A program made the position numbers and the translations under genes. A DNA stretch of 64,000 nucleotides from Bugula neritina (taxonomy: Eukaryota > Animalia > Bryozoa), in the NCBI GenBank assembly GCA_964035545.1, contig OZ037771.1:12647133-12711132 (forward strand), in the 5' to 3' direction. Below, in pieces: positions 6,101 through 58,523 of the stretch; within the stretch, counting starts at the first letter, position 1; each line of letters begins with the position of its first letter. The notes beneath the pieces were generated by a model. It made no database searches and was not told the DNA's origin. It saw only the letters and a list, made by a program, of their open reading frames with translations.

Positions 6101-9100
6101 GGCGAAGCTGCCGGGCGAAGGAGCTCGCATGTACGATGCGTGTGAGGCTATGAGTGTTGTGATGAAGCAGCTCGGCATCGCTGTCGACGGTGGTGAGTCA
6201 TGTGGAGTGCAAGTCTCATCTACTGCAGTTGTAGCTAGTTCAAGTGTTTAATATTGATTGATTGAAGAACCTTCTGTATTTACTAATTGGTTTCTTTGAG
6301 GAATTTTATATATTTATTAGACTTGTCGAATCTAACTGGCTTTGCCTAAATAGCGTAGGGCTTGTTGTATTTATATGTGCCCATGTCTGTGTTGGCAGCA
6401 TGCTGTGTGTACATAGTTTCAGTTACCATTACTGCAGGTAAAGACTCACTAAGCATGGCGGCTAGAGTTAATGATGCTACAGTCAAATCTCCTGGAACTG
6501 TTGTTATCTCCACCTACGCTGCGTGTGAAGACATCACTAAAACTATAACTCCTGACTTCAAGTGCCCAGACTCTATTGGTAATTGTCCTTTCTTCTTCCT
6601 CCTGCGGCTCTAGTGCTAGGCTGCCATATTTATCCACTCTAGAAATATTGAGCTCAGCATTGGGAGTTGTGTCCCCACAGGCCATATATTACAAAATCTT
6701 TTATTCACACTGTTAATGCAAGTGTTTATGCTATTAGCCTCATTAGATCAGAGTAGTTTGTCGTTTTAACCTTGACCTTCACTTTTTAGCATTAGTTTCC
6801 TTTGTTAAAACATTTTACCAAGAAATGTAGTATATATTCAATTGTTGGCCTATTGTTGACCAGTTCCACAGCCGTTTGATATAAGTATGAATAGTTTTTT
6901 AACCTTTTTTTATAAAACTGCATTGTTCATTTGCTATAAAATTTACTGTGCTGTTCTCAGGTGAGCTAGTTTACATCAACCTGTCTAAAGGCCAGTCCAG
7001 CAGACGCGTGGGCGGATCAGCTCTGGCCCAGGTTTACGGACAAATAGGCGACGTTTCTGCCGATTTGGATGACTCGGACCTGTTCAGCAGATGTTTCCAG
7101 ACTTTACAAACTCTAATCAACAGTAAGTATTAGTAAATCACCTTTATCTGTCAGCTCTTTATCTGCTAGCTCTTTATTCGCTAACTTTTTGGCTGCTAGT
7201 TTTCCATCTGCCTTTTTCTGTTATTGCTAAATCAATTTATTCAATTACTTAAGTTTTTGTTTCTTTAAATTAAAAAATTCGGGTCATCCATTTTGTGACG
7301 AGTTTAAATTTATATGAGAATTCGTGGTCATTAATCTTTTAATTAGTAAGTATTTTTAATAAGATTTGATTTTTGAAGTCCTATTTAGGTTAGAAAAATA
7401 AAAAAAGAACTTTTGACTTTGGGCTTCGCTGAGGACTCGAACCCGGAACCTCCTGCACCCCTTACCTTAGGTGCAGTGCTCATACCACTCAGCCAACTGT
7501 TCCCTTGATATTTTAAGGGCATATTTCGTTATAATAATGGTATCACAACAATTAATTAAAACCAATTAAATTGCCTGAAAAAATTTATTATCCAATTAAA
7601 ATATTTCTCGTTGCAACAATGCATAGTTTGAATATTTTTTTAATAATTTTAAATATTGTCGTAATGAAAAATGACCCAAATTTATGTACTGTCATTATTG
7701 AAAACATATTTCATAAACAGCAAATTTAATTATCGTTTTCATTTTTTATTTAAACTGTATTTTTAGTAAGAACTCAAAAAAACAGATTTCACATGACCCA
7801 GTTTAGTTTATAACTTCATGCTTCAAATTATTTACCATTTTTACTAAACAAATGAGATTAACTAAAATTTGATAGTGTTAGAATAGACTTGTGTTATGAC
7901 GCTGTTGAGAATTTATTTGAAAGGTTTCATTAGATACACTATTTTTACAGATTTGTTCAATAAGTATATTATATGCATAAAAATAGTCCTACATATATTA
8001 TTATAAGCAGGTAAAATGTAGCCATAAGTATACTATAAAAAACTCACGCAAGTTTATAGTCACCATCTCTGTGAGAAACCCCTGATAAAAAGGGCTTTTT
8101 AAATCAGGCTAAGGACTTATTTAAATGAGGCACAGGAGCAATTATGACTGGATGCTCTTCCTAACATTACTAATGGCCTTAGTCAGGGCTCGAACCTATG
8201 ATCTTGTGTTTACTAGGCAAACGCTCTCACCCCTAGACCACGGCTGCTCTCTAGCCATAGGTATACTATAATCAGGTAGAATGTAGCCACAATGTACACA
8301 ATAAGAAGGTGTAATGTAGTCTGTGCCATGTTCTGTAGAGGGTTTAGTTACCGCCGGACATGATGTGAGTGACGGTGGGGTGTTGACTTGTCTCCTAGAA
8401 ATGGCGTTTGCTGGTAACTGTGGTGTGGAAGTCTCATTCCTATACCCTGGAGATATTGACGATACCGTAGATGGTAAACTATACTTTGTTCTGCTTGCTG
8501 ATATTATTCATAAGTTCAGCCATCCTATATAATTTAGGTGTGGGCAACTGGGGACCCCGGGGTCACCTGTGGCCTTTTGCCAATTTTTCAGTGGCCCTTT
8601 TAATGCTTAAGATCAGTAAAAACTGTTGTATACATTCTGATTAGCACAGTCTAGGTTTGGTGACCAATTTCTTTATTATAATAAAATTTAATATGTGTAC
8701 AATCATGTGGCCCTTCGTTTTGGCTGACTTCTAAACTTGGTTTCCCACCCCTGCAGTATATATGTATAGTCCTGTCCATTTTATATACTCTCATAGGTAC
8801 AATGTAATCTACTGCAATACAATGTCTCTTTTATTTAATTTCTCGTACATGGGATGTGATCTACTATATAATACAATGTAGACAGATGCTTTTCATATTT
8901 AAGTGTTGTCTACCCTCTTCCACGAGGAGCTGGGGTATATCTTAGAGGTCAAAGGGTCACATCTCCAGGAAGTGCTGACACTTTTTCAACAAAACAACAT
9001 TGAGTGTCAGCATATAGGAATCTCCACTGCTTCAACCACAGTATGTAGTGTTATATAATAATAGTATACGGTATGTAATGTTATATAATAATATACAATA

Positions 9101-15085: not shown

Positions 15086-16011
15086 AGTTGTTATGCTGAG
15101 CAACCAACAACGTAACTTACTTATTGTACTTTTGCTCACACATAAAGTATACTGTATTGTTTCTACATTATTTGAGGACTCTCAGTTTTTTGCTTTTGAA
15201 AAGCAAGTTCTTGTATGGATATTGTCTTTGTGGGAACCAAAAATTGAATTGTGATTTGTCGGGGGTTTGAGTTTTGAGTTTCAGTTTTGGTTATCACTTT
15301 GAGTTTGACTTATCATTATCAGCTATCGCTTATCGACAATCAATAAATATAATCAATAATCCGTGAGTTAATGTGACACTTTGGTTTACGTTACGAAGAC
15401 ACTCAGCACAGTGGCAGTCTGCATCCTACTTACATTGACGTTCATTTTCCTATTGCCAAAGAAGTGAGTCACTTGTGTTTTTATTAATAATAATAATATT
15501 ATTATTATACATATTGATTATGATATTCATATTGATATTGATATTACGTTATTTTAATTGTTTATATTAATATTACAAATAATAATATTGATAATTGTAG
15601 TAATAGGCCTACCAATGGTAATAATGATTATTCAACCAAGGTAAAATTCTGTGTCAGATTGAGATTAAACCTAAACCTTTAGCAGTATTACTATTAGTGT
15701 TATTAGATTCAGTTGCACTGAATTAATCTTTACCTACTCCTCGTCTTCATGTTGCTGATAACTATAATTAATAATACTTATACTTTTACTCAAAAGTAAA
15801 GCTGTGAGCATTGCCAAAGGTAAAGTAAGAGAAATTCATAACGGGAAGTATGGGAATGCGGTGAATATCTGGCTTTTTGATTTGTCTGCATTGCTTTGTA
15901 AGTAACATTGATTTGTATGTTTAATTTTAGCTCCTTCTGGAGAATTGTTAAATGGGCTGTTTGGGGCCTTAATTGGTGACTTCTTATAATAAAAGACAAT
16001 TTATACAAACA

Positions 16012-18866
16012 ATGAATACCTCAAGTGCTACATTAACCAGTCTGTGGGTTGATGAAAGTCCAACAAAGCTGGCGCACATGACTACTCCCACAAAGGCCAA
16101 CGTGAAGCAAGAGTTTGAGCAATATATTCGGGACACAGATGGTCTCGGCTCATTAGCTAAGCAGGTAACTCTCAGTTTCCCTCACAGTATATATAGAAAT
16201 TGTGAAGTAGAAATTGATCATTTTGATGTTCAAACAAGTGATCCTCCAATACAACTAATATTTACATTTCATGCTGAGTGATTTTGTTGTCATATTTTAG
16301 TTCTTTATCTAAATTTGAAATTTATTTTGAAACACTGGTTTTGTAAGCTCGTTAATTACTTTATAGTTTCTTAGTTTATTACATAATGCTTGGAACATAA
16401 TATTTTATTCATGTGTTACATCCCTACATCCTCTCAATCTGCATCAAACTGTAAATTCAATTTTCACAAAGATAACTGTTGTCATCTAGAAGGGCATGTT
16501 AACAAGTAACAATCGTTCACATACCAGCAGCATGTAACTCCTATAATAAAATTTTCTCATCACGTGGTATCTTAAAGAACGTTTTCTTTTCACCACAATT
16601 AGAGTTTAATATATCTCTTCATAACTGAACTTCCCGTCTGCCGGTAGTTAAAGTATTTCACTGTTTCTTTTGGTCTGGGCACTGTAAAACCTTTGTTTAT
16701 TTTTTCCCGTGATATTCGGGCACACATGCTGTTCACATTTTCTTTCAGACTGGCATAGTAGATACGAATGGGGAGTTGCTATCTGTAGGAAGAATCAGTG
16801 ATAACTTAAGCCACACAGCTAGACCAGGTAGGTCAAGGTCATTTGTTACACTGTTTATTCTGAAATCCTCAGACTAACCGGTATGTCTGGTTACCATGGT
16901 TACCATATCTCTGTAGGTACTCACTTCGTGTACGTTAGCTCTCCTAAACCGGGAACATCCAAAACCTCTATCCTACCGAAGGCCAGTGATCGCTTCCAGG
17001 TAAACTTCTAAAATAATCTGGTTTATTTTACTGTCTTTCATTGCTCTTCCTTCCAAATATTTGAATTATTATATTCACTCAGTTGTTCAATGATATCCTC
17101 TGTCATCTGGGCAAATCATCTCTTGCACCTGCATGTAGCTCTTCACTACAGCTTCTATTTGCTGTAAATCTATCATCCCAGTCTTTTCTACTATCTTGAC
17201 TGAAATCATGTAAATATATGATAGCTATTGTCAGATTCTGGTAAACTGAAGATGCACTCCTGACACACGCCTTTTTATACTCACAGATAGCGAGCAGTGA
17301 CTCTAGCGGACACCCCCTCACAGTATTTCCTGGTCAAAGTGGCATATCCTACACTAATGATATCGGCCTCAGTAGGAAGAGGTTGGCAGATGGAAGTCCT
17401 GCTGTTTATAGTTCTATAGATCCGTATGACAACGCTGACAGGTGAGTGAGAGTGTGTGTGTAGTGACCTAGTTGTGTCGTGACCTAGTTGTGTTGTGACT
17501 TAGTTGTGGCATACATGTAACTTACTTTTTACAAGTAACTTACTCTATGCCAATTGTTTACTTTATACAGATTACTTACTTAAGCAAGTGACTTACTCTT
17601 TAATACTGACTTACTTTATACTCGTAACTTACTCTCTACAATGATTTACTCTTGTAGTAAAAGACCGCGTAAGAATGAAAAAGGGAGCAAAGGGTTGAGG
17701 CATTTCTCCATGAAGGTGTGTGAGAAGGTGGAGCGCAAGGGAGTGACGACTTACAACGAGGTCGCTGACGAACTAGTCAGTGAGTTCACAGACCCCCGGT
17801 ACGTGCAGAGCGAGCAGGCCCAGTACGATCAGAAAAATATCAGGAGACGGGTTTACGACGCGCTGAACGTGCTCATGGCTATGAACATCATCAGTAAGGA
17901 GAAGAAAGAGATTAAGTGGATCGGTCTGCCCACCAACTCTGCCCAAGAATGTCACAATCTCGAGGTACCTGAGAATGTTGGCATCTCTTGACATTGAAGG
18001 ATACGCTTTCTTGAAACTTTAATGATAAGTTACATTTTACAGGTATTTTATTATGTCTCTCGTGTACAGGTGGAGAAGGCAAAGAGGAACGAAAGAATTG
18101 CAATGAAGACGCAGCAGCTGCAGGAGCTGGTGCTGCAGCAGATCGCCTACAAGAACCTGGTGGAGAGAAACAGAACGCTGGAGTGCACCCAGGGGACGCC
18201 TCCCGACAACTCCATCATACAACTTCCTTTTGTCATCGTCAACACGGATAAGAAAACGGTCATCGACTGCAGTATATCTAATGACAAGTAAGTCACTCCT
18301 ACACCTCTACACCACTACACTCCCAAACCCCACAGCTTACACTCCTACGTGTTCATGCGGGTCTGCAGGCTTTTTAGCCTTTGTGTCTAGAGTTTTTTTA
18401 AAGAAAAATAGTTTTTTATGTTGCGTAAATTTAAATGAATATGAATATTCATTATATAATAATTATTGTTTTTAAGTTGGAAGGTAAATGTTCATTTGAC
18501 GTGTTTGCTGCAAATACACTTCAAATACTAAAAAGTTGAAAATAACAGCTTTACTTAAAATAATTTTTCGCATTGACCCTGAGTCTACATGTACCTTTGT
18601 GATATATCAAGTTGAAAAGCCAGTCGACTTTTCATAAACATTTCTGTTTTCCTTCAACTCTTTCTAGGTACGAATATTTGTTCAACTTTGACAATACGTT
18701 TGAAATTCATGATGACATTGAAGTGTTAAAGAGAATGGGTCTGGCATATCACCTTGAGAAAGGTCATTGTTCGCAAGAAGATCTCCACAAAGCAATCGCA
18801 ATACTACCTCGATCTCTAGAGCACTGCGTTAGAGACATCGCTCAAGGCAGCGGAGAGACAAGCTAA
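16012..18866 (+). CDS. TFDP1: Transcription factor DP (E2F dimerization partner)
   Basis: Phase-consistent exons 16012-16164, 16749-16827, 16917-16999, 17287-17441, 17658-17964, 18070-18287, 18668-18866. Motifs: [28 protein letters not shown] box [52 protein letters not shown]. Confidence 0.96.
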
Positions 18867-21740: not shown

Positions 21741-21951
21741 GGAGCAGTTGTGGTCTAGGGGTTAGAGCGTTTGCCTAGTAAGCAAGAAGTCATGGGTTAG
21801 AGCCCCAACAAAGGCCATTGGTGATGTTAGGAAGAGCATCCAGTCATAATTGCTCCTGTGCCTCATTTAAATAAGTCCTTAGCCCACTTTAAAAAGCCCT
21901 TTCTATCAGGGGTTTCTCACAGAAATGGTGACTATAAACTTGTGTGAGTTC
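21741..21951 (+). mobile_element. tRNA-Thr(AGT)-derived SINE, copy 2
   Basis: Head GGAGCAGTTGTGGTCTAGGGGTTAGAGCGTTTGCCTAGTAAGCAAG followed by the shared body. Confidence 0.88.
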
Positions 21952-23573
21952 TTGTATTTCAGTTCCTGCTACCCAAATAGGACAAAGCAGTGATAGATGA
22001 GAATTTAGGCAAAGAAATAACTTCAATCTATTATAATCTTATAATAAATGACAAACAAATATTTAGAATTTTCTGTCTAACCATGGAAGTGTATGGAAGG
22101 AAGTGGTAAAGTTAGGACAAAGGAGGAGGCGGGTAATTTGCTTAAAGTAAGAGTAAACATGCCTTTAACATGCCTAACCAACACCATTCCTAAACGCATC
22201 AATAATTCCTAAATAAACATTAATAACACCATAAGATATGCACAGGCATTCAACACCAGCATATAATGATAAAATACCTTTAACATTAGACATACATGTA
22301 CATTGTTGAAATATAATATAAAGCATATTATATATAACATAATATATTTATATGATATATGATACAAGCCTATAATAAAGTGTATTTCTATATAGTAATG
22401 CTGGTGATGCTCAAGTGTGGGTTAAAAGATTTCATCTCATACCTTTCTAACTTTGCATTAATGTAACTATAATTAAATTCTTCTTATATGTCAATGAGTA
22501 AATTAATCTTATATAAGTTTATACATTAAATTAAACTACCGTTCATTGCAACCATTAATCTTCTATTATCATTTAATCAAGCGAACTGCCTGATTAATTC
22601 AATTTGTTTTTAGTTAGGTACAGTAGTAGAGATCAAACTGTAATAGCTTAAATTCTTTATTTTTCTTAATAAATCTTGGGATTATAAGCCCAGGGCTGAA
22701 ATGTTCTGATGTATAACGCTATAACTTCTTTTGCTACATTTCTAATTTCTAGAACACAAGCTTTTTTCAATTTCTCCATTACTGCACCCACCCAATGATT
22801 TTATATCTGGAGCTTGCAATAGAAAAAGTCTTACATTTCTGTTAGTGATAAGTTAAATTTACTGCTGCTTACATTCGTGTCTGAATTTTAATGGTGAGCT
22901 ACATTCTTGAATTTTACTGCCAAGTGATATGATAACTCCCGATTGAAGACAGTTTGCTGCAGGCCTACACAAAGGTGCAGGTAAACACATTAGGCAAAAA
23001 AACACAAACACCAACATAATATATTTTGATAATTGTTTAAAGTTTATAAATTTTAAAATTGTGGTTCTACAACTGCATTATGTAACAAATTATTTACAAT
23101 TAAAAGCTCTATATCAAAATAGAAAATTGACAATATATATTCTAATTAATATATAAACTATAGAAAACAAAGATAAACACTGAACAATCTAGAAACATTT
23201 AGTTTAACTTTGTGCTGAGCACAACGTCACCATTTGGCATTGCGTTTTGCAGGATGGCAAATTTCAAATGTATGACTCTGACAGCTGGGAAAGTTTTTAC
23301 AGAATCAGTGATGGGCTATTTAGGTGTGACTTGCTCCGAATATCAAAGTGAAACAAATAGATAATAATATATTTATAATTTTTCTTTTGCAGGTAAGTTG
23401 CAATAATACAATTTCACAACTTTCATATTATATATCTGCTAATGTTGGCATATTAAAATATTAAAATTTAGATATACGCATACTGCAGATTGATATATAA
23501 TAGCTTTGAGTGGTGAGACTTTTTTAAAATTAGTAGTTAAATATTTTAAATATGCTGTAAATAACAGAATTGC

Positions 23574-26500
23574 ATGTATGCAGCAGCAACTAGGAGTGTC
23601 AATATGCCAGTCCGACTGAAAGGGTCGGATGAAGATTATTTACCCGAAGTGGAAAGGAGGTTCCTCTTCGATGACACGGCTGTCTTGGAGCAACAACAAG
23701 CTAACAAAACAGGAAATGGCGGACAGACAGTTGCCAAGGAGTTATTCAAATCTGAACAGGCAAGACAACTGCTAATTTGATGAATAAATAACTATTATAA
23801 GCCAAACTCACAACATTTTGAATCACTATGACATATAACTATATGTAACGAGATGTAAAAGCACAATATAAAATTACATAAAGACAAATATAATATCCAG
23901 CTGTATTTTAATAATACAACAGTTTTATAAGTTAGACTATGAATATACATATGAATATACATTATTTTTTAAAGAAAATATCAAGTCAGGAATAAAGTTA
24001 TAAAGTCAGCCCTAATCATCACCAAACCAATATCTCAAGTCTTATTGATGGCTAATTATTTTCTATATTTGACACTGGTTTTAATTTATATATAAAACAA
24101 GTAATGCAGTGAATATTATAAAAGTGCATAAGATTTCTAAAGGTCTATCCACAGGACTTTTGTATGCAAAATATGGCCAATCACAATAAACCGAATGTTG
24201 GTGATTTATAGCAATGAAATTAAACATACATATTTTTTCGTGAAATAATTGGTTTATAATTTACTAAACTAAAAATATTCTGTTTACAGAAGGTTTTGTA
24301 CAAGTATATTCTAAATTGCTTCCAAAATTAAAGTTTTATTGAATGCTTAAATACATTATATATAGATGGTTAAACTTTTGAAACATGATCATAAATTTCG
24401 ACAAAGTGTGGACTGTAGGGATTTTTCAGTGATAAGACCTAATTAAGATAAAGACAGCAACACTGGAAACACTGCATTAACATGTATAACTCTTATTTGA
24501 CTATTAGCAAAGCACATAGTATGTATGCAGAATAAGCATGCACTGAAATATTCTTTTATAAATTAAGTTTGTTTAAACCTCTTCCATTACCAATTTATCA
24601 GACTACCATATTTTATGCTTTTAAAAGCCTAGGTTTTATATAAGAAATAAATGTGTGTGTTTCCAGGCTCCCCTTGAAGACATCTATGACATCGTAGATA
24701 GAGATCATGCTGACGTTGAGAACGAGGCGCTGCACAACCTGGTGGCTACGTTGCTGCCAAGCATTGTATTCCGCGGCCTGATACTGCTGCTCATCATTGC
24801 CAACGCCATCATCCTCGGAATACAGACAGATGAACAGTTGGTAAGTTGACAGATTATCACCAACTTGACTCAGGAATATACATTATTTTAGTTAGTTTCT
24901 GTACCATACTGCACTTTAGAGTTATGCTCCCTCACAAACAACTTTGCAGTGTAAATTTTATAAGTTACTGAAAGGAAGCTAGTAAACATTAGAACAACAG
25001 AAATTAAAGTATATATAATATAATATATAATGATATTGCATCTGTTTACGTCAGCTGTTGGAATTTCAGTGTAAATATTCAATAAGATATCCATAATGCC
25101 TACCATGATACTATATGTTGGTATCAATGTGTATGCTGTCATACAATAATTATAATATTCAGATATTTGTAGGGGAAGGAATACGCCTACCTCTTTTCAA
25201 TCCTGGACCAGTTTATTCTCACCATATTCGTAGTCGAGATATTGTTGAAATGGTACTATGGCTTCCTCATTTTCTGGAAGGTTGGATGGAACATTCTAGA
25301 CTTTGCTATCGTAGCCGCTTTACTGCTAATACCGGCCCTTCAGTATGTGGGGAGTGGCCGAATTCTTAGAATACTGAGAGTGTTGAGGGCAGCCCGCAGT
25401 CTTCGCAGTATCAGCGGGTTACAAGGGCTATCTTTGGTTGTGCAGACGGTCATCCAGTCCTTGCCAGATATGTTTAATATAGCAGTGGTTCTATGCATTA
25501 TTCTTCTAGTTTTTGCGGTGGTGGGTATAACCCTGTTCGGTAAGGATATACCAAAGTACTTTGGCAATCCGGAGAAGGCAATGTTCACGCTATTTATCTG
25601 TGTCACACAAGATGGTTGGTTGAATATATTTGAGGCGTTCAAGGAAGCTGGGCAAAGCCAGCCATGGATATACACTGTGGGAATACTGTACTTGATACTA
25701 GCCATTACAGTTGGGGCCTTCGTCTTTGCTAACCTGGCTGTGGCTGCTGTCGTTACTAACTTGGAAATCGCAATGAAAGAGATCAAAGCTGAGAACAAAT
25801 CTGATGACGCTCTGAAATTCATTGAAGACGAAGAGGTTAGTGCTATATATAATTATAACGCTGACCATGAGCTCTACACAAGCCCTTTACTTTATTCACC
25901 AGCAAATTGATGTCTTCTCCCAACATTGATTCTTGTCAAGTATTGATATGTGAGCATAGCATAGAAAACTAATATAATAAAATAAGTCAACAATGCATCT
26001 ATTTAGTATTATATAATAATATATAGTAAGCGGGGCCCTTTAACCAGTTGATAGTAATCAAACTCAGTAGCATTTCAAGTTAGTACTCAGTCTATATTTT
26101 AGTTCACCAATTATGCAGGTAAAATACATAAATGCATGTATTTAGGTGACTCACATACCAATAACACCAGCTGAAGAGGTTACCAAGAACTTTGATTTCA
26201 GCACTCAGGCCCCGATACACGCCCCGGATTTAAGCAGTTTGCTGACTCTAGAAAAATTTGAGAACTACATGCTATTGCTGACAGCTTTGGAAGAGAATTT
26301 GGCTGAATATAAGGCTATAAGAGAAGACTTAGATCGCATGTTTGATATCATTTGTGAGCTGAATATACAGGAAAAGACCGGCTCCGCCAATGAGGTTAGT
26401 TGGTACATTCTTATGACATCATCAACCTAACACGCAAGTCTCCATGTTCGTAGAATGATGACGAATATGAAAATTTAATGCTTAATCCAGTTTCTCTATT

Positions 26501-27759: not shown

Positions 27760-30700
27760 TTATAATATATCGAGAGATATTCTCCTCCGAATTGCCTGTA
27801 AATTAAAGAGAACACATTCTACTGTTTGCAGTGAGTTTGATTCACCACCCCACCCGACTCATTACAAGGCTAGACTGAGAACTGAGTCTACAAAGAACTG
27901 ACTACACAAGACAGAACTGCATATCATAACGAATACAAAACTAGTCTAAGCAAGCAAACATGAAGATAAACAATAAAATGTCACCATAAAAATGTCACAA
28001 CATGTCACAACATGACACAACATGTCACAAATAGATGCTAAGTGCTAACACACAGGGCGGGGGGGGGGGGGGAGAGGGGGGATTTCTCATTCTCGTATAC
28101 TAAGTAACATCAAATAAATTAAATAATAAATATTCAACAAAAAAACAAAAACAAACACATGTTTTTTACTGACGAGTATTTCAACGGGTGATAACTGCTA
28201 ACAAGTGCTATTGGCGACTGAAAATTTCCACTTTTATTAGAGTTGATGTCAAGCATTGGCCCTGAGTTTATACAGCACAGCACGTGTAGAGAAACTTCCG
28301 TAGAAGGCGGCACAAACTTACGTCAGACGACGAGGAAGATGGCAGTCCAGTGGGGGTCAGGTCCAAGACAGCGTTGCAGTGGAATCCCACGTTAGTCAGC
28401 ACCAACAGGTACTCACAGAGGCTGAACATGGAGTAGACTACAAGAGAGTGAAATCTTGTCATCTCAACAAAACATGTTATCATATCATAAATAGCTTCTT
28501 GATAAGACCGGTTCTGTTTACTAACTGGACCAGTTCTGTCTACTAACTGGACCAGCCCGGGTTTTCTAACAGGACCGGTTCTGTCTACTAACAGGACCGG
28601 TTCTGTCTACTAACAGAAGCAGTTCTGTCTACTAACAGGACCAGCTCTGTCTACTAACAGGACCAGTTCTGTCTACTAACTGGACCAGTTCTGTCTACTA
28701 ACAGGACCAGTTCTGTCTACTAATAGGACCAGTTCTGTCTACTAACAGGACCAGTTCTGTCTACTAACTGGACCAGCTCTGTCTACTAACAGGACCGGTT
28801 CTGTCTACTAACTGGACCAGCTTTGTCTACTAACAGGACCAGCTCTGTCTACTAACTGGACCAGTTCTGTCTACTAACTGGACCAGTTCTGTCTACTAAC
28901 AGGACCAGTTCTGTCTACTAACTGGACCAGTTCTGTCTACTAACTGGACCAGTTCTGTCTACTAACAGGACCAGTTCTGTCTACTAACAGGACCAGTTCT
29001 GTCTACTAACAGGACCAGCTCTGTCTACTAACAGGACCAGTTCTGTCTACTAACAGGACCAGTTCTGTCTACTAACAGGACCAGTTCTGTCTACTAACTG
29101 GACCAGCTCTGTTTACTAACAGGACCAGTTCTGTCTACTAACTGGACCAGCACATATTGGGCCTACCTGAAGGTTCACAGTAGGTATTGTGCCTCCAGTA
29201 GAAATAGGCAGCACCCAGCAGGCAGCAGAGGTAAAACATAAACAGCATCTTCTTATATCTCAGAGAGACTCTCAGCTACAATATAATAGAGAATTCTAGA
29301 GCTTGGAGTTGTCTCTCCTCACAGATCTACCTTCTCAATAAACTGCATTATACAACATTATGTGTTACCCAATTACTATGCATTATACAATTAATATACA
29401 TTACACAACATTAAACACTCTACATTATATTACCCTGAATATATAATGATGTCACACATGTGGAATATCCCCCCCCCCCCCCCGGACTCTTACAAGTACA
29501 CTACTTTCATACTAAAACTGTTGTGACTAATTATCTGTTATTGATTATAATCTTGGAAATAGGGAGCAGCCGTGGTCTAGAGGTTTGGGGTTTGCCTAGT
29601 AAGCACAAAGTCATGGGTTCGAAACCCCACAAAGGCCATTGCTGATGTTAGGAAGAGCATCCAGTCATAATCGTTTCTGTGTCACATATGAATAAGTCCT
29701 TAGCCTGATTTAGCAGAAAACCCCTTTTATCAAGGGGTTTCTCACAGGGATGGTGACTATAAACTTGCATGAGTTTTATAGTCTTGGACATAGATGATCA
29801 GCTAATCTGTAGAGAGAAGGCGGAGCATACCTTGTGCTGAGCCGTGTGACTATAGAGAGACATCTGTAACAGAATAGTGCCCAGCATGTACGCCACAGAC
29901 GAAAAGAGAAAAGTAATGAAAGACGTCTTGTGTAGCCCTGAAAATACAAGCAATAGCTGATAACATACAAAACTTTATAAATTCTAGTTATATTATTATA
30001 TTTTTATTATTATATATTATTATTATTATATAAATATATTACATTATTATTATATTGTATCATATTATTTAATATTAATTCTGGTTGCTTGAACACCACC
30101 AAAGTTTATAATAATAAAAGTTGTAGGAATATAAATGGACAGGTAAAAATTATAAAGGAATAGCTGTAACACTCAATGTGTGAGGTGAACATACTTTGTA
30201 CTTATTATATACATGTATGTTTGTCAACTTCTAGAGGTCATTGAAATTATATAATCACATGGAATAAAGTGTTTGCAAAGGCCACTGACCTTGCACTACC
30301 CTGTGAAGGTCATCATAAATATAATAGTAATATATAAACTAGAGTTGAATACTTTTATATAATCTGTACCCTCATGATTGCAGCTGCTGACGCTGTGTTA
30401 TTGTTATTTCTAGTTGTAGTCACACTACACGATATTCCCTCTATCAACGGTTACAACATGTTAACTTGGTGAGATTCACACACAGAGAATGTATATATTC
30501 AAGTGGGTAAATGTTAACCCAGTTAGCCTTTAGCTAAGACGTGAAGCACCAGCACCCAGTACAACCACTCTTCATATGAGTTTATATACTATACAGGGAA
30601 TACCCTAGTCGACTCTAACTAGTAGAAATGGGGATAGAAGATGGAGAGACTCATAACACTAAACTACATCTATTTATACAATTTGCAATATATCTAAAAA

Positions 30701-33845: not shown

Positions 33846-36800
33846 ATGGAGACAAGATACTGCGACAAGTTTCGTCCTGTTGTAAGTTTGCGCTGCTACG
33901 TGAATTAGCATAAGTTGAAGAATATAATTCTTATAGCATTTGACAGATACATTTGTACACTTTTAGATTCTCAAGTGGAATATTTTGTTTGTATTCATTG
34001 TTCGTTCATATTGGTAGAAATTGAAATTAGTGTCTGACAAATTGTAGCAATTGAATTAAAAAATATTATTGTTTGCAGTATTGTACTTTTCATGTTCAGT
34101 TTATAACATTGTTTCACTGATCATGTTGATTAATTTTTTTTAAGGATGAAGATGCATACTTGAGAGATTTTATTCGGGCTGTAGAGCATAAAGACTTGTC
34201 TTACATAAAGTTTATTGTTCCAATTATCAAAGTGAGTTTAAATTTTTCATTTTGTTAAGCCAAATTGAAAATTTAAAATCAACTTGTTAACACACCCATT
34301 CCCACACACACACACGCACACACACACACACACACGCACGCACGCACGCACACACACACACACTAACAACAAACATTTGCAGTGGTCAATAATAAACAAC
34401 ATACAATTAGACAAAATCTAGTATTAATCAGCTGTAATTGACATTTCTAAGTATTCGACACTCTGCCTTTTAGTTTTTGTGATGAAATTCATTTAAAAGT
34501 AATTAACATGGCTGCTATGTTCATAGATTATTATAGGTTAAGTTTTGCTGCACATAACCTAATAAGTACTTTGAAATGACATCACAGCTACTGGTAACAC
34601 TTTGTTTCAGGACCAACAGAAGGAAGTGTGCACGTCCATTGATCAGTGTGGTCACTATCTAGAGTTGAGTAAAGAAGACAGCTACAAATATGACAAAGTT
34701 CTGGCTCACGGGCTGTTGTTGTCGTCGCACCATGGCAACCTAGATATAACAAATTACCTCCTGGAACAAGGAGCTTTGATCAGTTATCAAAATGAGGTAC
34801 AGTTTAACCAGTCGACTTTGTTCGAACTTTACTTTAGTTTTTTACCTTCAAAGCTTAAATTAAGCGACTCCATCATTATAAAATATATGCCACATCGTTT
34901 GTTTGAAATTAATGCTGTAAAATCTTTTCTCTGGTAATTATTCTTATTAAGCATATTTTAGAAGGTATTTTACCATAATTACAAAGCAGGGAGTTGTCTT
35001 GCCTTGAGTGGTTTTTGTTTATATTTTAAATTACCTATAAATCCTACACAAGGTAATTTATTTTACCTGCCTGTGATAAACATGACTTGTGTATATGTGA
35101 GGAGTTATGTTCTCTTACTCTATATTTAGTCAGGTGACACGGCACTCATCAAAGCGTGTGAAAGAGGTCACACTGAGGTGGTCAAGACTCTGTTGGCTCA
35201 TGGAGCTGACATCAACCAGACCAACCTGGTGGGCTCCAGCGCTCTGCAGTGGGTGTCCAGGACTCATTGTGATAAGAGATTTGAAACAGTGAAGCTTCTA
35301 CTCAGCTACGGTGATATCCAAGTTGATCTCAAATCTCACAAGGTTAAAGGTTATTTCCTGTTTTAGCAGATGTTGAAAAAATAATTTGTCAGCTTGAGAG
35401 TTATGGACTTAAAAAAACTAATATTTTCTGCATTTTTGTCTGTCTGTTTGTCAGAATTCGGTTCTTATTTCTTAGCCAGTAATTATAGAGAGAGCTAAAG
35501 AATAATAGCAGTTGTTGTACTTATGTCATAGAGACTATACAGGTGAATGTATGAAAGCTGTCAAAGTTGTCTCTACATTGCGACATATTTTCATCTTTGT
35601 TTGCTGACCAAATAGGTCAGCATTTAACTCACTGACAGTTTCAGGTGGTGGATTAATACAGACTGCTGCCACAACAAGCAATGAATAGGATTATCTCTTA
35701 AAACTTGCACAATTTTTCTGTAGTTATCATCTTTTTATTACAGAAAAGTCGTACGGCCCTGCACTGTGCTGCGGAAAGCGACGAAACAGGTGTAATATGC
35801 AGAGATCTTCTTGACAAACTGGCTACAGTTAACATTCAAGACATCGAGGGGATGACTCCCTTACATCTCGCTGCCTTTCGAGGTTTAGACATCAATGTGC
35901 AGTTGCTCATACAGTACGGAGCTCATATCAACATCCAAACTCACAAGGTGTGTGTTTTACTCCTTTATATGATTCACAAGACTCTTCTAAAAATAGAATT
36001 GTTTAAACTTTCAAGCATTTTGTATAACAGAATGATGGTTTAGACTTCAATCTGAAAAGTTAGCCATGCAAAGTAATTAAATAATTTTAGACATTTTAAG
36101 AGTTCACAATTTTTTGCAATTATTATAAAAATTTTAAGAAAAGTTGTTACTAACTGCATTTTCTTTCATTTGCATTATGCGAATGGATGCTCGTACGATG
36201 AATTTGAGGTTGCAGTTTGTGTGAACTTGTGGTTGTGGTTTCATTTGGATACAACTGTTTCCAAACATTGAAAGAAAAATTAATTCACATAATGCAAAGC
36301 TTGCAAACATAGTGATTACAATATGTGGCAGAGCATGGCGTAGCTAATCATGAGTTAGTATTCTTTTATAAAATTAAACGATTACAGTTTGGACTAACAG
36401 CACTACACATAGCGATGAGGGAAGGACATTTCAACACTGTGAAGTTGCTGTTGGTCGCAGGAGCCGACCTTGACATTCAAGACTCGGTGAGTCGGCATTT
36501 GAATTCTTAGATCAACACAGTTATTCTATTCTCAGATTAACACAGTTATTCTATTTTGAATTCCATTGACCTCTATGGTTGGTATATATTGTAGTGTGGA
36601 CAGAAAGCACTGGAGAGGATGAAGACGTATGCTAAGTTATCTAGCAAGTATGAGTATAGTTTGATAGAGGAGTATATAGCAGAATATCAGGATGAGATCA
36701 AGACCACTGAGGTACGTATCACCTATACTACTGCTGTCCTTATTGCTATTACAATTTGCTGTTATTCAAAGCAGTATCAACATTGGAGTTGTCATCTTAT

Positions 36801-42607: not shown

Positions 42608-43238
42608 TAGCCAGTTCAGCCAATGTTTAAGGTCAACACTAAATTAGTCATCCCTTGTATAACTCTCACCTAACTTATAACATAATAGTCACTATCCCGT
42701 GAGAGCCACTGGTGTAACGGGTTTTTAACGAGCACTAAAGATTTATTCATATATATGTGGCTCATAATTTTCAATATTTCAGCTTCTATAATTTTGAATT
42801 TAAAATGTTAAAACAACTCATAGCTAGTCTGAAACATTGTAATTTTTCTACAAGAGGCATCTGACCAACTTTCCCATTAGTACTGGTCTACTGGAACATG
42901 AAGTGTTATTAGTTTGAGCTGCTATTTTTGTGTGAGAAATTAATATTTACTGCATGGCATTACAAAAGTGTCAGTCTTTCAACACACACACAATGCTTAC
43001 ATTATTGCTATATCTGGCAGCTAATATACATTCTGTTGCTATACATAAATTCAGCAGTGATTGGGATATGAGTAGTTGCTAAGTCTATTCTTATTATTTT
43101 ACACTTGACTCAGTTATTGAGTAGGTTATAAACGGTTTTTTATGCAAGAATTTATCACTTTTATGTCAAATGGTTATAAATTAATGATTGTTTAATTACA
43201 TCACAATTCAGGAGGTGCAGAAAGGGGTGCACAGTAAA

Positions 43239-43443
43239 AACTCACTCAAGTTTATAGTCGCTATCCCTGTGAGAACCCCTGATGGAAAGTGTTTTTGTTA
43301 AATCGGGTTAAGGACTTATTTAAATGAGGCACAGGAGCAATTATGACTGGATGCTCTTCTTAACATCACCAATAACCATCGTCCCGAACCCATGACTTTG
43401 TGCTTACTAAGAAAACACTCTAACCCCTAGACCACAGCTGCTC
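43239..43443 (-). mobile_element. tRNA-Thr(AGT)-derived SINE, copy 4
   Basis: Matches the other copies. Confidence 0.85.
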
Positions 43444-49817: not shown

Positions 49818-50295
49818 ACAATATGTAGCAACTGCTTAACACTAAGCATATGGTGTTGAACTATAAACAAAATTAGACAACTCTTAATTCCAGATAATTT
49901 TATTGTTTACTTTAGAAATTCAATGAAACTTGAAAATAAAAGTATGGGAGTAAATTATATAAAACTTTATGTACTACTGGTACATTTAAATACTAACAAT
50001 ATAATTGTATAAATGTATTTACATGTAAAATTTACAATATGTATTTAAACCTGTTATTTATCACTAACTCAATAAAATAAGTCTATTATTGGACTAATTA
50101 GTAGAATTAGAACCAGCTTAATTGAGCATTGAAATCTGAGAGGTACATGCGCAACCCGAATTTTTCATGAAACATCTTGAATGAGATTGAGGTTATTTGA
50201 GATATATTACTAGATATAATAACCCATATAAATATCTATTTAAATTGCTTGAGTCACAAGTCACAGATACAAGTCAACACTCAAGTAACAGGAAG

Positions 50296-53200
50296 CTAGA
50301 GACGAGGTCGTCTCCCCCTGCTCCGAGTTGAGCTACTAGGGGAGAGAAGCTGAAAGTTCCGTAGCGCTTCAAGATTCTGTCTATTTTGCAATTCCAAAGC
50401 ATTGTTCACTCTTTCATAGTGGTCCTTCGACGCTGTTGAGCTACAAGAAAATGACAGATATATGCAACAGATATAAAAAGAATTCAAGCAAGTTTATAGT
50501 CACCATCTCTGAGAAACCCCTGAAGGGAAGGCTTTTTAATGGAGGCTAAGGACTTATTCATATCTGGCACAGGAGCAACAAACACTTGTCAGAAGTTCCT
50601 CTAGGTGCATTTATATTTTAGAGTTGGCTCCTCCCATCTGGAACAAAGGGAACCTCCATAATGGAGAGAAAGCGCATAAAATCAGTGTGGGAGGAGCCAA
50701 CTCCAAAATATACATGCCCCTAGAGGAACTCTTGAAAAGGGTCTGTTATGACTGGATGCTCTTCCCAACATTACCAATGGCCTTTACTAGGGTTCGAACC
50801 CATGACTTCATGTTTGCTAAGCCTAACACTCTAACCCCTAGACCACGGCTGCTCCCACCCGTGCATCAGATATGCTCCAAGAAATTAGACCCACTCATCT
50901 CAAAGATGTCTACATATCCCAAAGACGTCTACATATCCCAAAGATATGTAGATGTCTCAAAGATATCTACATATCCCAAAGATATCTACATATCCCAAAG
51001 ATATCTACACATCTCAGAGATATCTACATACCCCAAAGATATCCACATTAGAAAATGAGGTTACCATGTGTGACCGGTAACTGAAAGAAACAGACCCTTC
51101 AATACCAGTTTAGTCTATACATACCCAGCGGCAGTCAGGATAGAACCAAGTTGAAGAGAAGAAGCTGACTGACTCCTCAACATAGCAATTTCTGCCTTAA
51201 AAGAGGCGTCGAGTGGTGACTGTGGAAGATCAGATCTTGGTCTCCTGGTACATGACAGTGACTGTCTAGCGCTACGTTGCGGTGTTTGTGTGAGTCTACC
51301 ACGTGGTGGTGTGTGGCTAGAGTCATGTCTTGGTGTCCTGGTACATGACAGTGACTGACTAGCGCTACGTTGCGGTGTTTGTGTGAGTCTACCACGTGGT
51401 GGTGTGTGGCTAGAGTCATGTCTTGGTGTCCTGGTATGCGACAGTGACTGTCTAGCACTACGTTGTGGTGTTTGTGTGAGTCTACCACGTGGTGGTGTGC
51501 GGCTAGAGTCATGTCTTGGTGTCCTGGTATGCGACAGTGACTGTCTAGCACTACGTTGTGGTGTTCTAGTAGGTGACAGTGTTAGTGTATGCTGTGGTAT
51601 TATGGTAGACGAAAGTTGCGTAAGTTTATATCGCGGTACTCCAACAGGTGATGACGTTTGACTAGAGCTACGTTGTGGTGTTCTGGTACGTGACAGCGAC
51701 TGTTTAGAGCTACGTTGTGGTGTCCCAACAGGTGATGATACTTGTGTGTGTATACCACGTGATGTTCGAACAGGTGATGGTGTTTGTGCGAGTCTACCAC
51801 GTGGTGGTGTGTGGCTAGAGTCATGTCTTGGTGTCCTGGTATGCGACAGTGACTGTCTAGCACTACGTTGTAGTGTTTTAGTAGGTGACAGTGTTAGTGT
51901 ATGCTGTGGCATTATGGTAAACGAAGTTTGTGTAAGTTTATATCGCGGTACTCTAACAGGCGATGACATTTGACTAGAGCTACGTTGTGGTGTTCTGGTA
52001 CGTGACAGCGACTGTTTAGAGCTACGTTGTGGTGTCCCAACAGGTGATGATACTTGTGTGTGTATACCACGAGATGTTCGAACAGGTGATGGTGTTTGTG
52101 TGAGTCTACCACGTGGTGGTGTTTGGCTAGAGCCATGTCTTGGTGTCCTGGTATGCGACAGTGACTGTCTAGCGCTACGTTGCGGTGTTTGTGTGAGTCT
52201 ACCACGCGGTGGTGTTTGGCTAGAGCCATGTCTTGGTGTCCTGGTATGCGACAGTGACTGTCTAGCACTACGATGTGGTGCTTTAGTAGGTGACAGTGTT
52301 AGTGTATGCTGTGGCATTATGGTAGACGAAATTTGTGTAAGTTTATATCGCGGTACTCTAACAGGTGATGACGTTTGACTAGAGCGATGCTGTGGCATTC
52401 TGGTACAAGATGATGTTTGTGTGTGTATACCACGCGATGTTCTAACAGGTGATGGTGTTTGTGTGAGTCTACCACGCGGTGGTGTATGGCTAGAGACATA
52501 TCTTGGAGTGTTGGTACGTGACAGAGACCGTCTAGAGCGATGCGGGTTGTCTGATTGCACACGGTCACCTTTTCTTGGCAGCATTGCAATGTTTTGGTTT
52601 GTAAAAGTTGCTTCCTTTGAATTTAGGAGTCTAGCATATTCCAAACCACAACCACTTAGAGAAGAATCAGAACTGCTGTCATAGGACAGCTCAGATACAT
52701 CTAGCTCCCGACCTGTGAAGCTGGAAGAAAGACTGAGGTTGGTGTTGTCTGCCCTCTTGCCTCTACTTGCCTCACTTTCAAATAACTTGGTGCTACGTCT
52801 GTTAGGAGATTTCCTATCATAGTTGAGTTTCCTGTGAGCCAATGAATCACCAGTATCCTGATGTGAGATCTCCCACGGCATTTCTCTACCAGAGTCATAC
52901 TTGAAGCTTCCAGTCAATCTGTCAGAGTAATACTTGGAACTTTCAGCTGGCCTGCCAGAGTAATACTTGGAGCTTCCAGTCAATCTATCAGAGTAATACT
53001 TGGAGCTATAGTCACCAGAAAATGAAGTTCCTTTGGCGCCATCAGACTCTTGATCGCGTCTAAAGAAAAGAGAATCATCAATATTTACCAGAGAGAGTGG
53101 AGATTATGGAGAGATCAGTGCAAAGAAGTCTCGACGTTCTTATAAAGCGTTAGCCAAGCAAATCGGCTGTTGATGCTCCAATCAGATTGGATGGCTAAGC

Positions 53201-56200
53201 ATTTGCGGACATAGTTTTAACGTTTTAAAGGAAAACTAACATGAAACAAGGAAAAGCTAAAAATTCCTTGTGCTGAGTTTGCTTGCCGGACATGGTTTGG
53301 CTAATTTAAGTAGCACAGTTATGAAAAACAAAAACATATTATACTAAGAGCTCTAACTATAATTCAGGAGTTGCCTTCTTTTTTATAAATTGAAAATCAA
53401 CCATTTTTAGAGAAAATAAAAACAAACAGCTGTACACAAGAAATTTATTATGAATAACTGCAGTACTTTGAAACAGAAAATCTTAGGAAATCATATTAAA
53501 ACTCTCTCTATGAGAAAGTTATGTAATGAAAACTAGCATTTGCCATATTTATTAGTTTACAATGTTTCAAATGCAGCAGCACGCTTCAATTCCTTTGAAA
53601 AAACGACGATTCCCAAGAAAAAGAAATGAACACAAGTTGACCAACAAGTCAAGAGACGAGTAGTCATTTTGTGGACAGTGAGAGGGATTAGTTAGTCTCT
53701 CACCCAGCATGCTGGTGTCGGCTACCACGGTACGAATATACAGTCTTGTTGACCAGTGAGTCTGAGAAGTTGTCTGTACACGGCGGGGAAAGCTTTCCAG
53801 AGATGTCAGTGCTGGAAACTTGTCTGGAGTTTCTAGAAGAAGCTGCAGCAGATATAAGTGAGTGGATATGATGATGTAGACCAATACAGACACTATACTA
53901 TACTGTGAAACAATACACTATACTATACTATATACTATACTATAGAACAATACACTATACTATATACTATACTACACTGTAGAACAATACACTATACTAT
54001 ATACTATACTATACTGTGGAACAATACACTATACTATATACTATACTATACTGTGGAACAATACACTATACTATATACTACACTGTAGAACAATACACTA
54101 TACTATATACTATACTGTAGAACAATACACTATACTATATACTATACTATACTGTGGAACAATACACTATACTATATACTATACTACACTGTAGAACAAT
54201 ACACTATACTATATACTATACTATACTGTGGAACAATACACTATACTATATACTACACTGTAGAACAATACACTATACTATATACTATACTGTAGAACAA
54301 TACACTATACTATATACTATACTATACTGTGGAACAATACACTATACTATATACTATACTACACTGTAGAACAATACACTATACTATATACTACACTGTG
54401 GAACAATACACTATACTATATACTATACTATACTGTGGAACAATCACTATACTATATACTATATACTATACTGTGGAACAATACACTATACTATACACTA
54501 CACTGTAGAACAATACACTATACTATATACTATATACTATACTCTTCCCTTCAGACACACTCAGGTCATAGCAAGCGTGTCAAATGCTCGTATAAGGACA
54601 CAATGGTAAAATGTTTAGCAAGCCAAAGGATCCTGAAAATGAACCACCAAGAGAAGGTCTGTAGCTTCTGCTGTGTGAAATGGAGGTTGAGAAAAAGGAG
54701 AAACTAACCTGACACGTCAGCTAGGGGCGTCAGCTGAACCCTCCGCCGTTTTGCTGCATGTTTTAGAACTGGAGCATCATGAGAACGAAGGTTGTGGGTA
54801 GACTGTTCTGAATATAATATATACAGAGTAGAGTATTATATAATATATACAGAGTAGAGTATTATTATATAATATATACAGAGTAGAGTATTATATAATA
54901 TATACAGAGTAGAGTATTATATAATATATACAGAGTAGAGTATTATTATATAATATATACAGAGTAGAGTAATATTATATAATATATACAGAGTAGAGTA
55001 TTATTATATAATATATACAGAGTAGAGTATTATATAATATATACAGAGTAGAGTATTATGTAACATATACAGAGTAGAGTATTATATGATATATACAGAG
55101 TAGAGTATTATTATATAATATATACAGAGTAGAGTATTATATAATATATACAGAGTAGAGTATTATGTAACATATACAGAGTAGAGTATTATATGATATA
55201 TACAGAGTAGAGTATTATTATATAATATATACAGAGTAGAGTATTATATAATATATACAGAGTAGAGTATTATATAATATATACAGAGTAGAGTATTATT
55301 ATATAATTATACAGAGTAGAGTATTATATAGTATATACAGAGTAGAGTATTATATAATATATACAGAGTAGAGTATTATATGATATATACAGAGTAGAGT
55401 ATTATTATATAATATATACAGAGTAGAGTATTATATAATATATACAGAGTAGAGTATTATATAATATATACAGAGTAGAGTATTATGTAACATATACAGA
55501 GTAGAGTAATATATGATATATACAGAGTAGAGTATTATTATATAATATATACAGAGTAGAGTATTATATAATATATACAGAGTAGAGTATTATATGATAT
55601 ATACAGAGTAGAGTATTATTATATAATATATACAGAGTAGAGTATTATATAATATATACAGAGTAGAGTATTATATAATATATACAGAGTAGAGTATTAT
55701 ATAGTATATACAGAGTAGAGTATTATATAATATATACAGAGTAGAGTATTATATAATATATACAGAGTAGAGTATTATATAGTATATACAGAGTAGAGTA
55801 TTATATAATATATACAGAGTAGAGTATTATATGATATATACAGAGTAGAGTATTATTATATAATATATACAGAGTAGAGTATTATATAATATATACAGAG
55901 TAGAGTATTATATAATATATACAGAGTAGAGTATTATATAGTATATACAGAGTAGAGTATTATATAATATATACAGAGTAGAGTATTATATAATATATAC
56001 AGAGTAGAGTATTATATAGTATATACAGAGTAGAGTATTATATAATATATACAGAGTAGAGTATTATATAATATATACAGAGTAGAGTATTATATAGTAT
56101 ATACAGAGTAGAGTATTATATAATATATACAGAGTAGAGTATTATGTAACATATACAGAGTAGAGTATTATATAATATATACAGAGTAGAGTATTATATG

Positions 56201-58523
56201 AAGGTACACACTAGTCTTCAAGGGTTCAAAACTCTTCTTCTGCTGCCGATGCTTTTGACCTTTCTCTGACTTTACTAAGTCGTGAACCTTTAGTAGGATA
56301 TCTTCAGGGACCACACGAGTCCACCTCCTAATTGAGCAGGAAACACATGTAGAAACCACAGGCTATACCCAGGCATGTATGTTACAATAAAACACACAAG
56401 TTTAAAGTCACCATCCCTGTAAGAAACCCCTGGTGAAAAGGGTTTTTGTTAAATCGGGCTAAGGACTTATTCAGGGATTGAATCCATGACTTTATACTTA
56501 GTATAGACAAACGCTCTAACCCCTACACCATGGCTGCTTCCTATGTAGGTTATAATAACATAATGCAATTTATTGCCACAAAGTATTTTACAACAAGAAC
56601 GGTACTGATTTTCACAGTTATTTAATAAATGAAATATAGTTTAGGGAAGAGACCTATTATAACTATTATAGTTTGTATTTTATATTATCTTATAAAATAC
56701 AAACTTTGATCACTGCACAGTGTATTGGGAATCTAAAAATATTTTCCTGGAGCCCTTCGATAGCAGGACACTGGGCACGCCTACACAACGCCCGCCATAC
56801 TTGTCAAGTTTACAGCAACTGTTAAATATATTCAGAACTTACTGTACTTTCTCAGTGTGTGTAGGGAAGGTAGAACTTGCTTCTCCCCAACTATTTTCAT
56901 CTTAAAATCAAAATAAAGAGGAGATAAACACACAAGTACAATAGAGTCATGTTGCATTACACTGTTTACCTGTCGAGCATCTCTTTATAATTTTATAACC
57001 AATCTATACAGATGTTACTATACTAATCTATACAGATGTTACTATACTAATCTATACAGATGTTACTATACTAAACTATACAGATGTTACTATACTAAAC
57101 TATACATGTGTTACTATACTAAACTATACAGATGTTATACTAAACTAAACAGATGTTATACTAAACTATACAGATGTTACTATACTAAACTATACAGATG
57201 TTACTATACTAAACTATACAGATGTTACTATACTAAACTATACAGATGTTATACTAAACTATACAGATGTTATACTAAACTATACAGGTGTTACTATACT
57301 AAACTATACAGATGTTATACTAAACAGTAAACAAGTGGTCAGACCTTGAACTTCCTCTCCTGGAACAAACTCTTCCTCAGTTACATATCCATCAGAATCA
57401 CTTGCTGGATCATCTACAGTTGAAATAGTAGTAGTAGTACTAGTAGTAGTAGTAGCAGTAGTAGTAGTAGTAGTAGTATCAGTGGCAGTACTAGTAGCAT
57501 CAACAGTAAAAGTATTAGTAAAATAGTAAAAGGAGTAGCGATAGTAGTAGCAACAGTATTAGTACTAGTACTAATACTACTAGTAGTAATAGTACTAGTA
57601 CTAATACTACCACTAATAGTACTATTACTAATGCAAAGCAAAACTAACCTTCATCCTTCACATTACACCATATCTCTGGACCTTCATGTTTATATGACTC
57701 CACCAAACCTTGACATAAATGAAGAAACTGATACTAATACTACATATAAATATGGCAAAACAATGAAATGTCTATGAATAACAACTGTGGTATCACAACT
57801 CCCATTATACATAGAATACAATCGGTAAGGATGGCTTCTAATAGACAGGAAAATGCTTACCATTATTCGTTCTGATTTCCATGCGATACAAATCAAGGAC
57901 ATCATCCTTGTGTTCAGGAACATTTCCATACTACAACATTTGTAAATAACCATCTAGAAGAACTTCAACGTTATATTTTCATATTTCTAGAAAATAACAA
58001 CTTAAAAAAAGAATTTAGAAATTTTAACGCTTTTAATACAAAAAACTCACGCAAGTTTATAGCCACTATCCCTGTGAGAACCCCTGATGGAAAAGGTTTT
58101 TTAAAAGGGGGCTAAGGACTTATTTAGATGAGGAGCAATGGCCTTTACAGGGGTTCGAACCTACAACCTTGTGCTTACTAATATAGCGCTCTAACCCCTA
58201 GACCACAACAGCTCTGTCAAATACAGATTACACCACATAATGTTGTGCAATGACAAGCATTCTATCCCGGGCAAATACTCAGGATATCGATTCTGTAAAA
58301 ATAGCCACACCACATAATATTAGATAAATCAGTGCTTTAGAGTTGAGACTAATTTCTGCTCTACAATACAACTGGCTATCGTCAGACTATATTTAGCTAG
58401 AACCATATCTTCAAATATCAACATGGTATATCATATATATACTACCTTTTCAGCTATTCTATCGACTGTGTTCATAAAGTTTTCATAACTTTCTCTTGTG
58501 CTTGCAATGATACTGTCATCCAT
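50296..58523 (-). CDS. Putative Scm3/HJURP-like CENP-A chaperone with a large basic Ser/Thr/Pro/Arg repeat region (~922 aa)
   Basis: Ten phase-consistent GT-AG exons: 58523-58446, 57930-57861, 57708-57649, 57413-57345, 56900-56843, 56327-56212, 54807-54709, 53842-53704, 53059-51125, 50440-50296 (2769 nt, a single terminal stop). The N-terminus MDDSIIASTRESYENFMNTVDRIAEK|YGNVPEHKDDVLDLYRMEIRTNNG|LVESY fits the Scm3 pattern. The gene model is more certain than the family call, and the exon-6 donor is weak. Confidence 0.72.
50484..50855 (-). mobile_element. tRNA-Thr(AGT)-derived SINE, copy 5, interrupted by a nested MITE
   Basis: The SINE sequence GGAGCAA|TTATGACTGG is split by a 167-bp insert. 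Confidence 0.85.
50579..50745. mobile_element. 167-bp hairpin MITE without target-site duplication
   Basis: About 60-bp imperfect TIRs (core AGTTCCTCTAGG.GCAT.TATATTTT.GAGTTGGCTCCTCCCA). The empty site is visible in other SINE copies. Confidence 0.82.
50900..51048. repeat. 20-bp tandem repeat (CAAAGATATCTACATATCC-type)
   Basis: About 7 copies in the last intron of the minus-strand gene. Confidence 0.85.
51245..52545 (-). repeat. In-frame coding tandem repeat with higher-order structure
   Basis: ~14-codon monomers arranged in about 3 larger blocks plus 31-codon sub-duplications. The frame stays open throughout. Confidence 0.92.
53890..54542. repeat. AT-rich minisatellite (CTGT[A/G]GAACAATACACTATACTATATACTATA...)
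   Basis: Many 31-36-bp units in an intron. Confidence 0.93.
54811..56199. repeat. 26/29-bp minisatellite (TATATAATATATACAGAGTAGAGTAT) filling an entire intron
   Basis: About 50 copies running from acceptor to donor. Confidence 0.95.
56392..56541 (-). mobile_element. tRNA-derived SINE, copy 6 (internal deletion)
   Basis: Both ends match the family; the central part is missing. Confidence 0.75.
57000..57325. repeat. 21/24-bp minisatellite (CTAAACTATACAGATGTTA[CTA]TA)
   Basis: About 14 tandem copies in an intron. Confidence 0.92.
58044..58214 (-). mobile_element. tRNA-derived SINE, copy 7 (internal deletion)
   Basis: Matches the family ends; box B GGTTCGAACC is present. Confidence 0.78.

Follow-up and report, generated by a model that had tools for sequence, protein, structure and literature searches.

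A probable HJURP/Scm3 ortholog of the bryozoan Bugula neritina, with its Scm3 domain divided among three micro-exons

The window analysed here, a stretch of 64,000 nucleotides of the Bugula neritina genome, contains a predicted gene of ten exons that, with a probability of roughly nine in ten, represents the single HJURP/Scm3 ortholog of this species and encodes its CENP-A loader, the Scm3 domain being encoded by exons 1-3 at the N-terminal end. This assignment was made in the preliminary description and is upheld by a combination of the Pfam match of exon 2, the helix register of exon 1, the agreement of exons 1-4 with a published candidate from Watersipora, the N-terminal position of the domain in a polar protein and the presence of CENP-A in the genome; the combination is needed because the score of exon 2 by itself is weak. 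The gene is an additional member of a family already reported across animals, another bryozoan included, and it brings the number of bryozoans in the HJURP set to two. The general question of the retention of HJURP in invertebrates had been settled by Hollis et al. in 2026. The main points of note are the array of CDK sites, a bryozoan DGYxTE motif and the explanation that the micro-exons offer for the difficult detection of such genes.

Gene model, introns and surrounding sequence

The predicted gene encodes about 922 amino acids. Splicing of the ten exons is predicted from the splice signals and the open frame; all coordinates are those of the window and all exons lie on the minus strand. 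The three micro-exons are read as real, with AG/GT ends and compatible phases (0, 1 and 1), and their exon-by-exon translation is as first described. Exon 1 (58446-58523, 78 nt, phase 0) contains the ATG start and the amphipathic Scm3 helix, ends with the Lys of the KY pair and has the donor AAG/GTAGTA. The ATG at 58523 is the first Met, because an in-frame stop lies six codons 5' of it. Exon 2 (57861-57930, 70 nt, phase 1) begins with the Tyr of KY after the acceptor TAG/ and continues with an acidic loop, a D-V-L-D-L strand and the hairpin up to N-N-G. Its donor (ATG/GTAAGC) is strong, and its acceptor is the sole Y-AG site in phase with that donor. Exon 3 (57649-57708, 60 nt, phase 1) holds the end of the domain and a Trp located 13 residues past the hairpin Gly; the acceptor (AAG/) has a tract of 80% pyrimidine and the donor is AAG/GTTAGT. 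As had been remarked, the right frame is missing from the list of open reading frames, where only an out-of-frame ORF is listed here. One DNA run covers the stretch about 100-fold, with zero differences in exons 1-3, and the joints listed in this run belong to an intronic repeat.

The claim that the frame continues through seven more exons was borne out: it is open, without a stop, to the TAG at 50298-50296, the donor of exon 6 being uncertain. Exon 4 (57345-57413) encodes an acidic stretch and the DGYxTE motif. It is followed by the predicted exons 5 (56843-56900), 6 (56212-56327; basic, with a weak donor and several alternatives), 7 (54709-54807; with a basic KRRR cluster that is possibly a nuclear localisation signal) and 8 (53704-53842). 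Exon 9 (51125-53059) is 1935 nt long and open over 644 codons in only one of the six frames. Exon 10 (50296-50440) encodes the C-terminal 47 codons and the TAG stop and is single copy in the genome; AATAAA at 49899-49904 (minus strand) is a candidate polyadenylation signal. When in-frame alternatives were compared, the chosen donors and the acceptors of exons 3 and 4 were the most consensus-like.

The donors of exons 1, 4 and 6 are weak, as might be expected if the gene were a true homolog of the Scm3 family but not a working loader (a wrongly spliced, non-expressed or diverged copy), the real loader being encoded elsewhere. Such a reading is considered very improbable, as all ten exons are open, exon 9 for its 644 codons through repeats, and the gene is single copy in the B. 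neritina genome.

Introns cut the 50-aa domain between K and Y and at the hairpin Gly, so that no exon passes the cut-off, and such genes are therefore missed. In human HJURP the introns lie between K and Y and inside the hairpin Gly, exon 2 has 67 nt, and the penultimate exon is very long. No publication on the borders of HJURP exons came to light. In the coelacanth, transcript bases 93-156, which lie over the scm3 domain, are missing from the assembly, and the authors describe this as a contig gap (PMC13322267). This gap is 64 nt long and, like the 70 nt of Bugula exon 2, a multiple of three plus one, a hint of common intron positions that is given as a lead only.

Intron 1 contains a high-copy SINE-like repeat (58040-58230, strand not assigned) that is non-coding for the gene. 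The element is of very high copy, with a 5' part that appears tRNA-like by eye; ARAGORN called no tRNA on it. Further copies lie near 8037-8250, 21742-21953, 29564-29777, 43236-43443, 50477-50854 and 56393-56474, and three copies are located in introns of the HJURP gene. Long intronic minisatellites with units of 37, 26 and 24 nt (53892-54543, 54812-56199 and 57004-57317, respectively) abut exons 7 and 8 and sit between exons 4 and 5. A CatSper4-like exon of the window is 99% identical to proteins from JGI contigs that carry the label AY690838, the mitochondrial accession of B. neritina (PMC2678162). On the plus strand, the window also contains a gene for a CatSper4-like channel, one exon of which is unusually long (25242-25910 and 26146-26430); its relatives in other metagenomes are 82-85% identical and include at least one labelled bryozoan. 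The plus strand further has ankyrin-repeat exons (34602-36043) and, at about 15973-17991, exons recognised by sequence that we take to belong to the gene of the E2F partner DP (TFDP).

Evidence for the Scm3 domain

Profile searches were made exon by exon. Exon 2 alone, searched against Pfam (24,736 families), matched only the Scm3 family (PF10384; E 0.012, profile positions 23-45), and its 15.7 bits fall below the PF10384 cut-off of 24.3 bits. Exons 1 and 3, searched singly, gave no match. The same kind of search gave an EF-hand match on the 22 aa of exon 4 (E 0.025), which was rejected as a chance match of 12 residues under the cut-off; because an exon of this length yields a spurious hit at such a value, E-values near 0.01 are weak for short peptides.

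A genome-wide Scm3 scan produced two candidates, exon 2 and a stretch of 22 codons at C3:28323050, which scores higher (21.3 bits on Pfam Scm3). The latter has K-Y and E-I-D-L, and would be the place to look for a real loader if the gene described here were not one. No helix exon was seen in the 9 kb upstream of it, it lacks a hairpin and it runs into a stop after its 22 codons; it was rejected as a chance match. Its surroundings are duplicated cysteine-rich exons, and a short gene for a secreted, cysteine-rich product follows directly. Because this chance stretch scores higher, the exon 2 score by itself is at the noise level of the genome. The DNA pattern of exon 2 also occurred at chance level genome-wide, with two matches versus four in the control.

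These scores, together with the failure of exons 1 and 3 to match singly, are what a chance resemblance would produce, in which exon 2 of an unrelated disordered, CDK-regulated nuclear protein mimics half an Scm3 domain. Against it, a helix exon lies directly upstream in the right register and phase. Counted from the Lys of KY (position 0), exon 1 has S-14, F-10, V-6, D-5 and I-3, and its hydrophobic moment exceeds that of 99.5% of shuffles (p about 0.005). An end of this kind, a helix register closing on Lys before GT, turns up about once in 50 kb of strand, or with about 4% chance within 2 kb, a rough figure for a pattern that was chosen after viewing the family. The KY dipeptide is split over the predicted splice in phase 0, K closing exon 1 and Y opening exon 2. 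The strand of exon 2 reads D-D-V-L-D-L and is followed by the hairpin N-N-G-L-V; the count from L to G is nine residues, the same as in the published alignments. As in the family, the domain starts close to residue 9, and the protein is polar with low hydrophobicity. The spacing from Gly to Trp and the DGYxTE motif, both outside the Pfam domain, agree with the Watersipora candidate. With these points taken together, a coincidence appears most unlikely, and an HJURP/Scm3 ortholog is the reading followed below.

Other searches added little. A sequence search of the PDB with exons 1 and 2 singly returned nothing relevant, no solved Scm3 or HJURP structure being matched. Exon 9 was used as a query both whole and as residues 1-160, and neither search retrieved a homolog; the ESM Atlas returned short, unnamed clusters only. 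A phmmer search of 1.84 billion proteins with a 30-codon frame over exon 2, of which seven codons are intronic, gave one match, which was rejected as a repeat-protein artefact. The exon 2 DNA pattern had no match over metagenomes, where records of the organism's own genome may be left out.

CENP-A partner and a proposed mode of regulation

The partner expected for the HJURP ortholog is found in the same genome. A CENP-A (CenH3) gene, an intron-containing H3 variant of four exons with a short basic N-tail, is located at C1:18550258-18552104 (plus strand). Compared with H3, its product lacks the canonical tail and has one residue more in loop 1; the Phe that follows this loop in H3 is replaced by Trp, and the Gln of the H3 motif P-F-Q-R-L is missing. 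The CATD exon matched CENP-A chains only when searched against the PDB, weakly so (best E 0.25). A single-copy candidate HJURP and a CENP-A gene thus co-occur in Bugula; elsewhere the two have been reported to be lost together (PMC13322267). Genome scans for SANTA (M18BP1) and Mis18 were uninformative. The Mis18 scan gave a weak Yippee-Mis18 match (C3:3777372-3777779, E 0.045).

Judging from what is known of the family, the helix of exon 1 would lie against helix 2 of CENP-A in antiparallel orientation, with the KY pair touching a conserved Glu of helix 2, and the strand and hairpin of exon 2 would cap the CENP-A targeting domain (CATD). CENP-A/H4 would thereby be selected over H3/H4 and handed to centromeres. 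Targeting and regulation would fall to the long polar tail.

This tail includes the product of exon 9, in which S, T, P, Q, R and H make up 66% of the residues and hydrophobic residues 17%. A separate 33-nt coding repeat (52890-53007, minus strand; 3.6 copies of an 11-mer containing Tyr-Tyr-Ser) is located at the start of the exon. A nested coding tandem repeat with periods of 93, 312 and 405 nt occupies 51235-52542 (minus strand) and encodes about 436 aa. Full CDK consensus sites number 25 in exon 9, versus a mean of 3.1 and a maximum of nine in shuffles; most of them lie inside the tandem array, and the copies are not independent, as they descend from a few repeat units. The Watersipora protein has 470 aa versus about 922 aa in Bugula, a gap close to the 436 aa of the array. 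Without the array the Bugula protein would have about 486 aa, near the length of the Watersipora protein, and a lineage-specific expansion is therefore its probable origin.

The basic S/T-P-x-R array is probably a target of CDK in S/G2/M, and its phosphorylation would keep the loader away from centromeric chromatin until the cell leaves mitosis; human HJURP is prevented from localising to centromeres by CDK phosphorylation (PMC12484383). When unphosphorylated the array might bind chromatin, from which CDK would release it.

The DGYxTE motif resembles degrons of the beta-TrCP type. It is a speculative proposal, and one we hold to be rather unlikely, that the Bugula loader gained its approximately 25 basic CDK sites by nested tandem duplication, doubling the protein and creating a chromatin-binding module switched by phosphorylation, and that the bryozoan DGYxTE just after the Scm3 domain could act as a phosphodegron. 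If the array were such a switch and DGYxTE a degron, the timing of CENP-A loading would have been rewired in a lineage-specific manner.

Comparison with the published HJURP/Scm3 family

Orthologs of HJURP with an scm3 domain are present in most animal lineages (Hollis et al. 2026, PMC13322267). The domain is defined by KY, spaced hydrophobic residues of the helix, an acidic and hydrophobic strand and D-x-G-x-L; the proteins are polar and disordered and have only the N-terminal domain in common (PMC13322267). Invertebrate orthologs are accordingly not as hidden as the preliminary description supposed, since Hollis et al. report them across Metazoa and Table S1 of the preprint includes a bryozoan, Watersipora subatra XP_067948887.1 (470 aa, HHpred E 0.77, scm3 18-53; PMC13001451). 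The available text of the preprint supplement has no Bugula entry (PMC13001451).

The published alignment rows were compared with the Bugula exons by eye. The helix of the Watersipora protein, a candidate that was likewise identified by computation (HHpred E 0.77), is identical to Bugula exon 1 at four of 15 positions (S-14, D-5, I-3 and K), and 11 of 24 residues of Bugula exon 2 with the split Gly are identical, with one gap. In both species a Trp stands 13 residues after the hairpin Gly, in Bugula within exon 3. Watersipora has D-G-Y-Q-T-E where Bugula exon 4 has D-G-Y-V-T-E, five residues further along. The Trp spacing and DGYxTE provide the most independent support for the orthology and the reading frame, as neither the Pfam model nor the evidence of the preliminary description covers them. 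Conversely, these motifs common to both proteins outside the domain independently strengthen the Watersipora protein, which belongs to the weakest kind of candidate so far published.

In the more distant rows, Salpingoeca rosetta has E-15, S-14, N-11, F-10, I-3 and K identical to Bugula exon 1, and Hypsibius has D-L-x-R-M-E-I and N-G in common with exon 2. Together with Priapulus, Dimorphilus and Limulus, these two show the hydrophobic residues at -10, -6 and -3, KY, D-x-x-D-L and nine residues to the hairpin Gly. They differ in the loop after KY, of seven or nine residues versus eight in Bugula, and in an unrelated tail. The hairpin of the Bugula protein had been thought closer to the fungal pattern, but is not specially fungal, as D-N-G is also what the published alignment shows for tardigrade, annelid and snail.

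Human HJURP and yeast Scm3 (PF10384) share with Bugula the landmarks S-14, an aromatic residue at -10 and E-K-Y in the N-terminal domain. The HMD and the HJURP_C repeat of human HJURP were not detected in the Bugula gene: HJURP_C (PF12347) had no match in exons 4, 6, 7, 8 and 10, in the complete frame of exon 9 or in its two ends outside the repeat. Its absence is expected, because invertebrate orthologs have only scm3 in common (PMC13322267). A genome scan for HJURP_C gave a weak match elsewhere (C6:14220438, E 0.066), possibly MEF2. Human HJURP has a few regulatory CDK sites (S210/S211 and S412; PMC12484383), whereas the Bugula protein is predicted to carry them in a repeat array.
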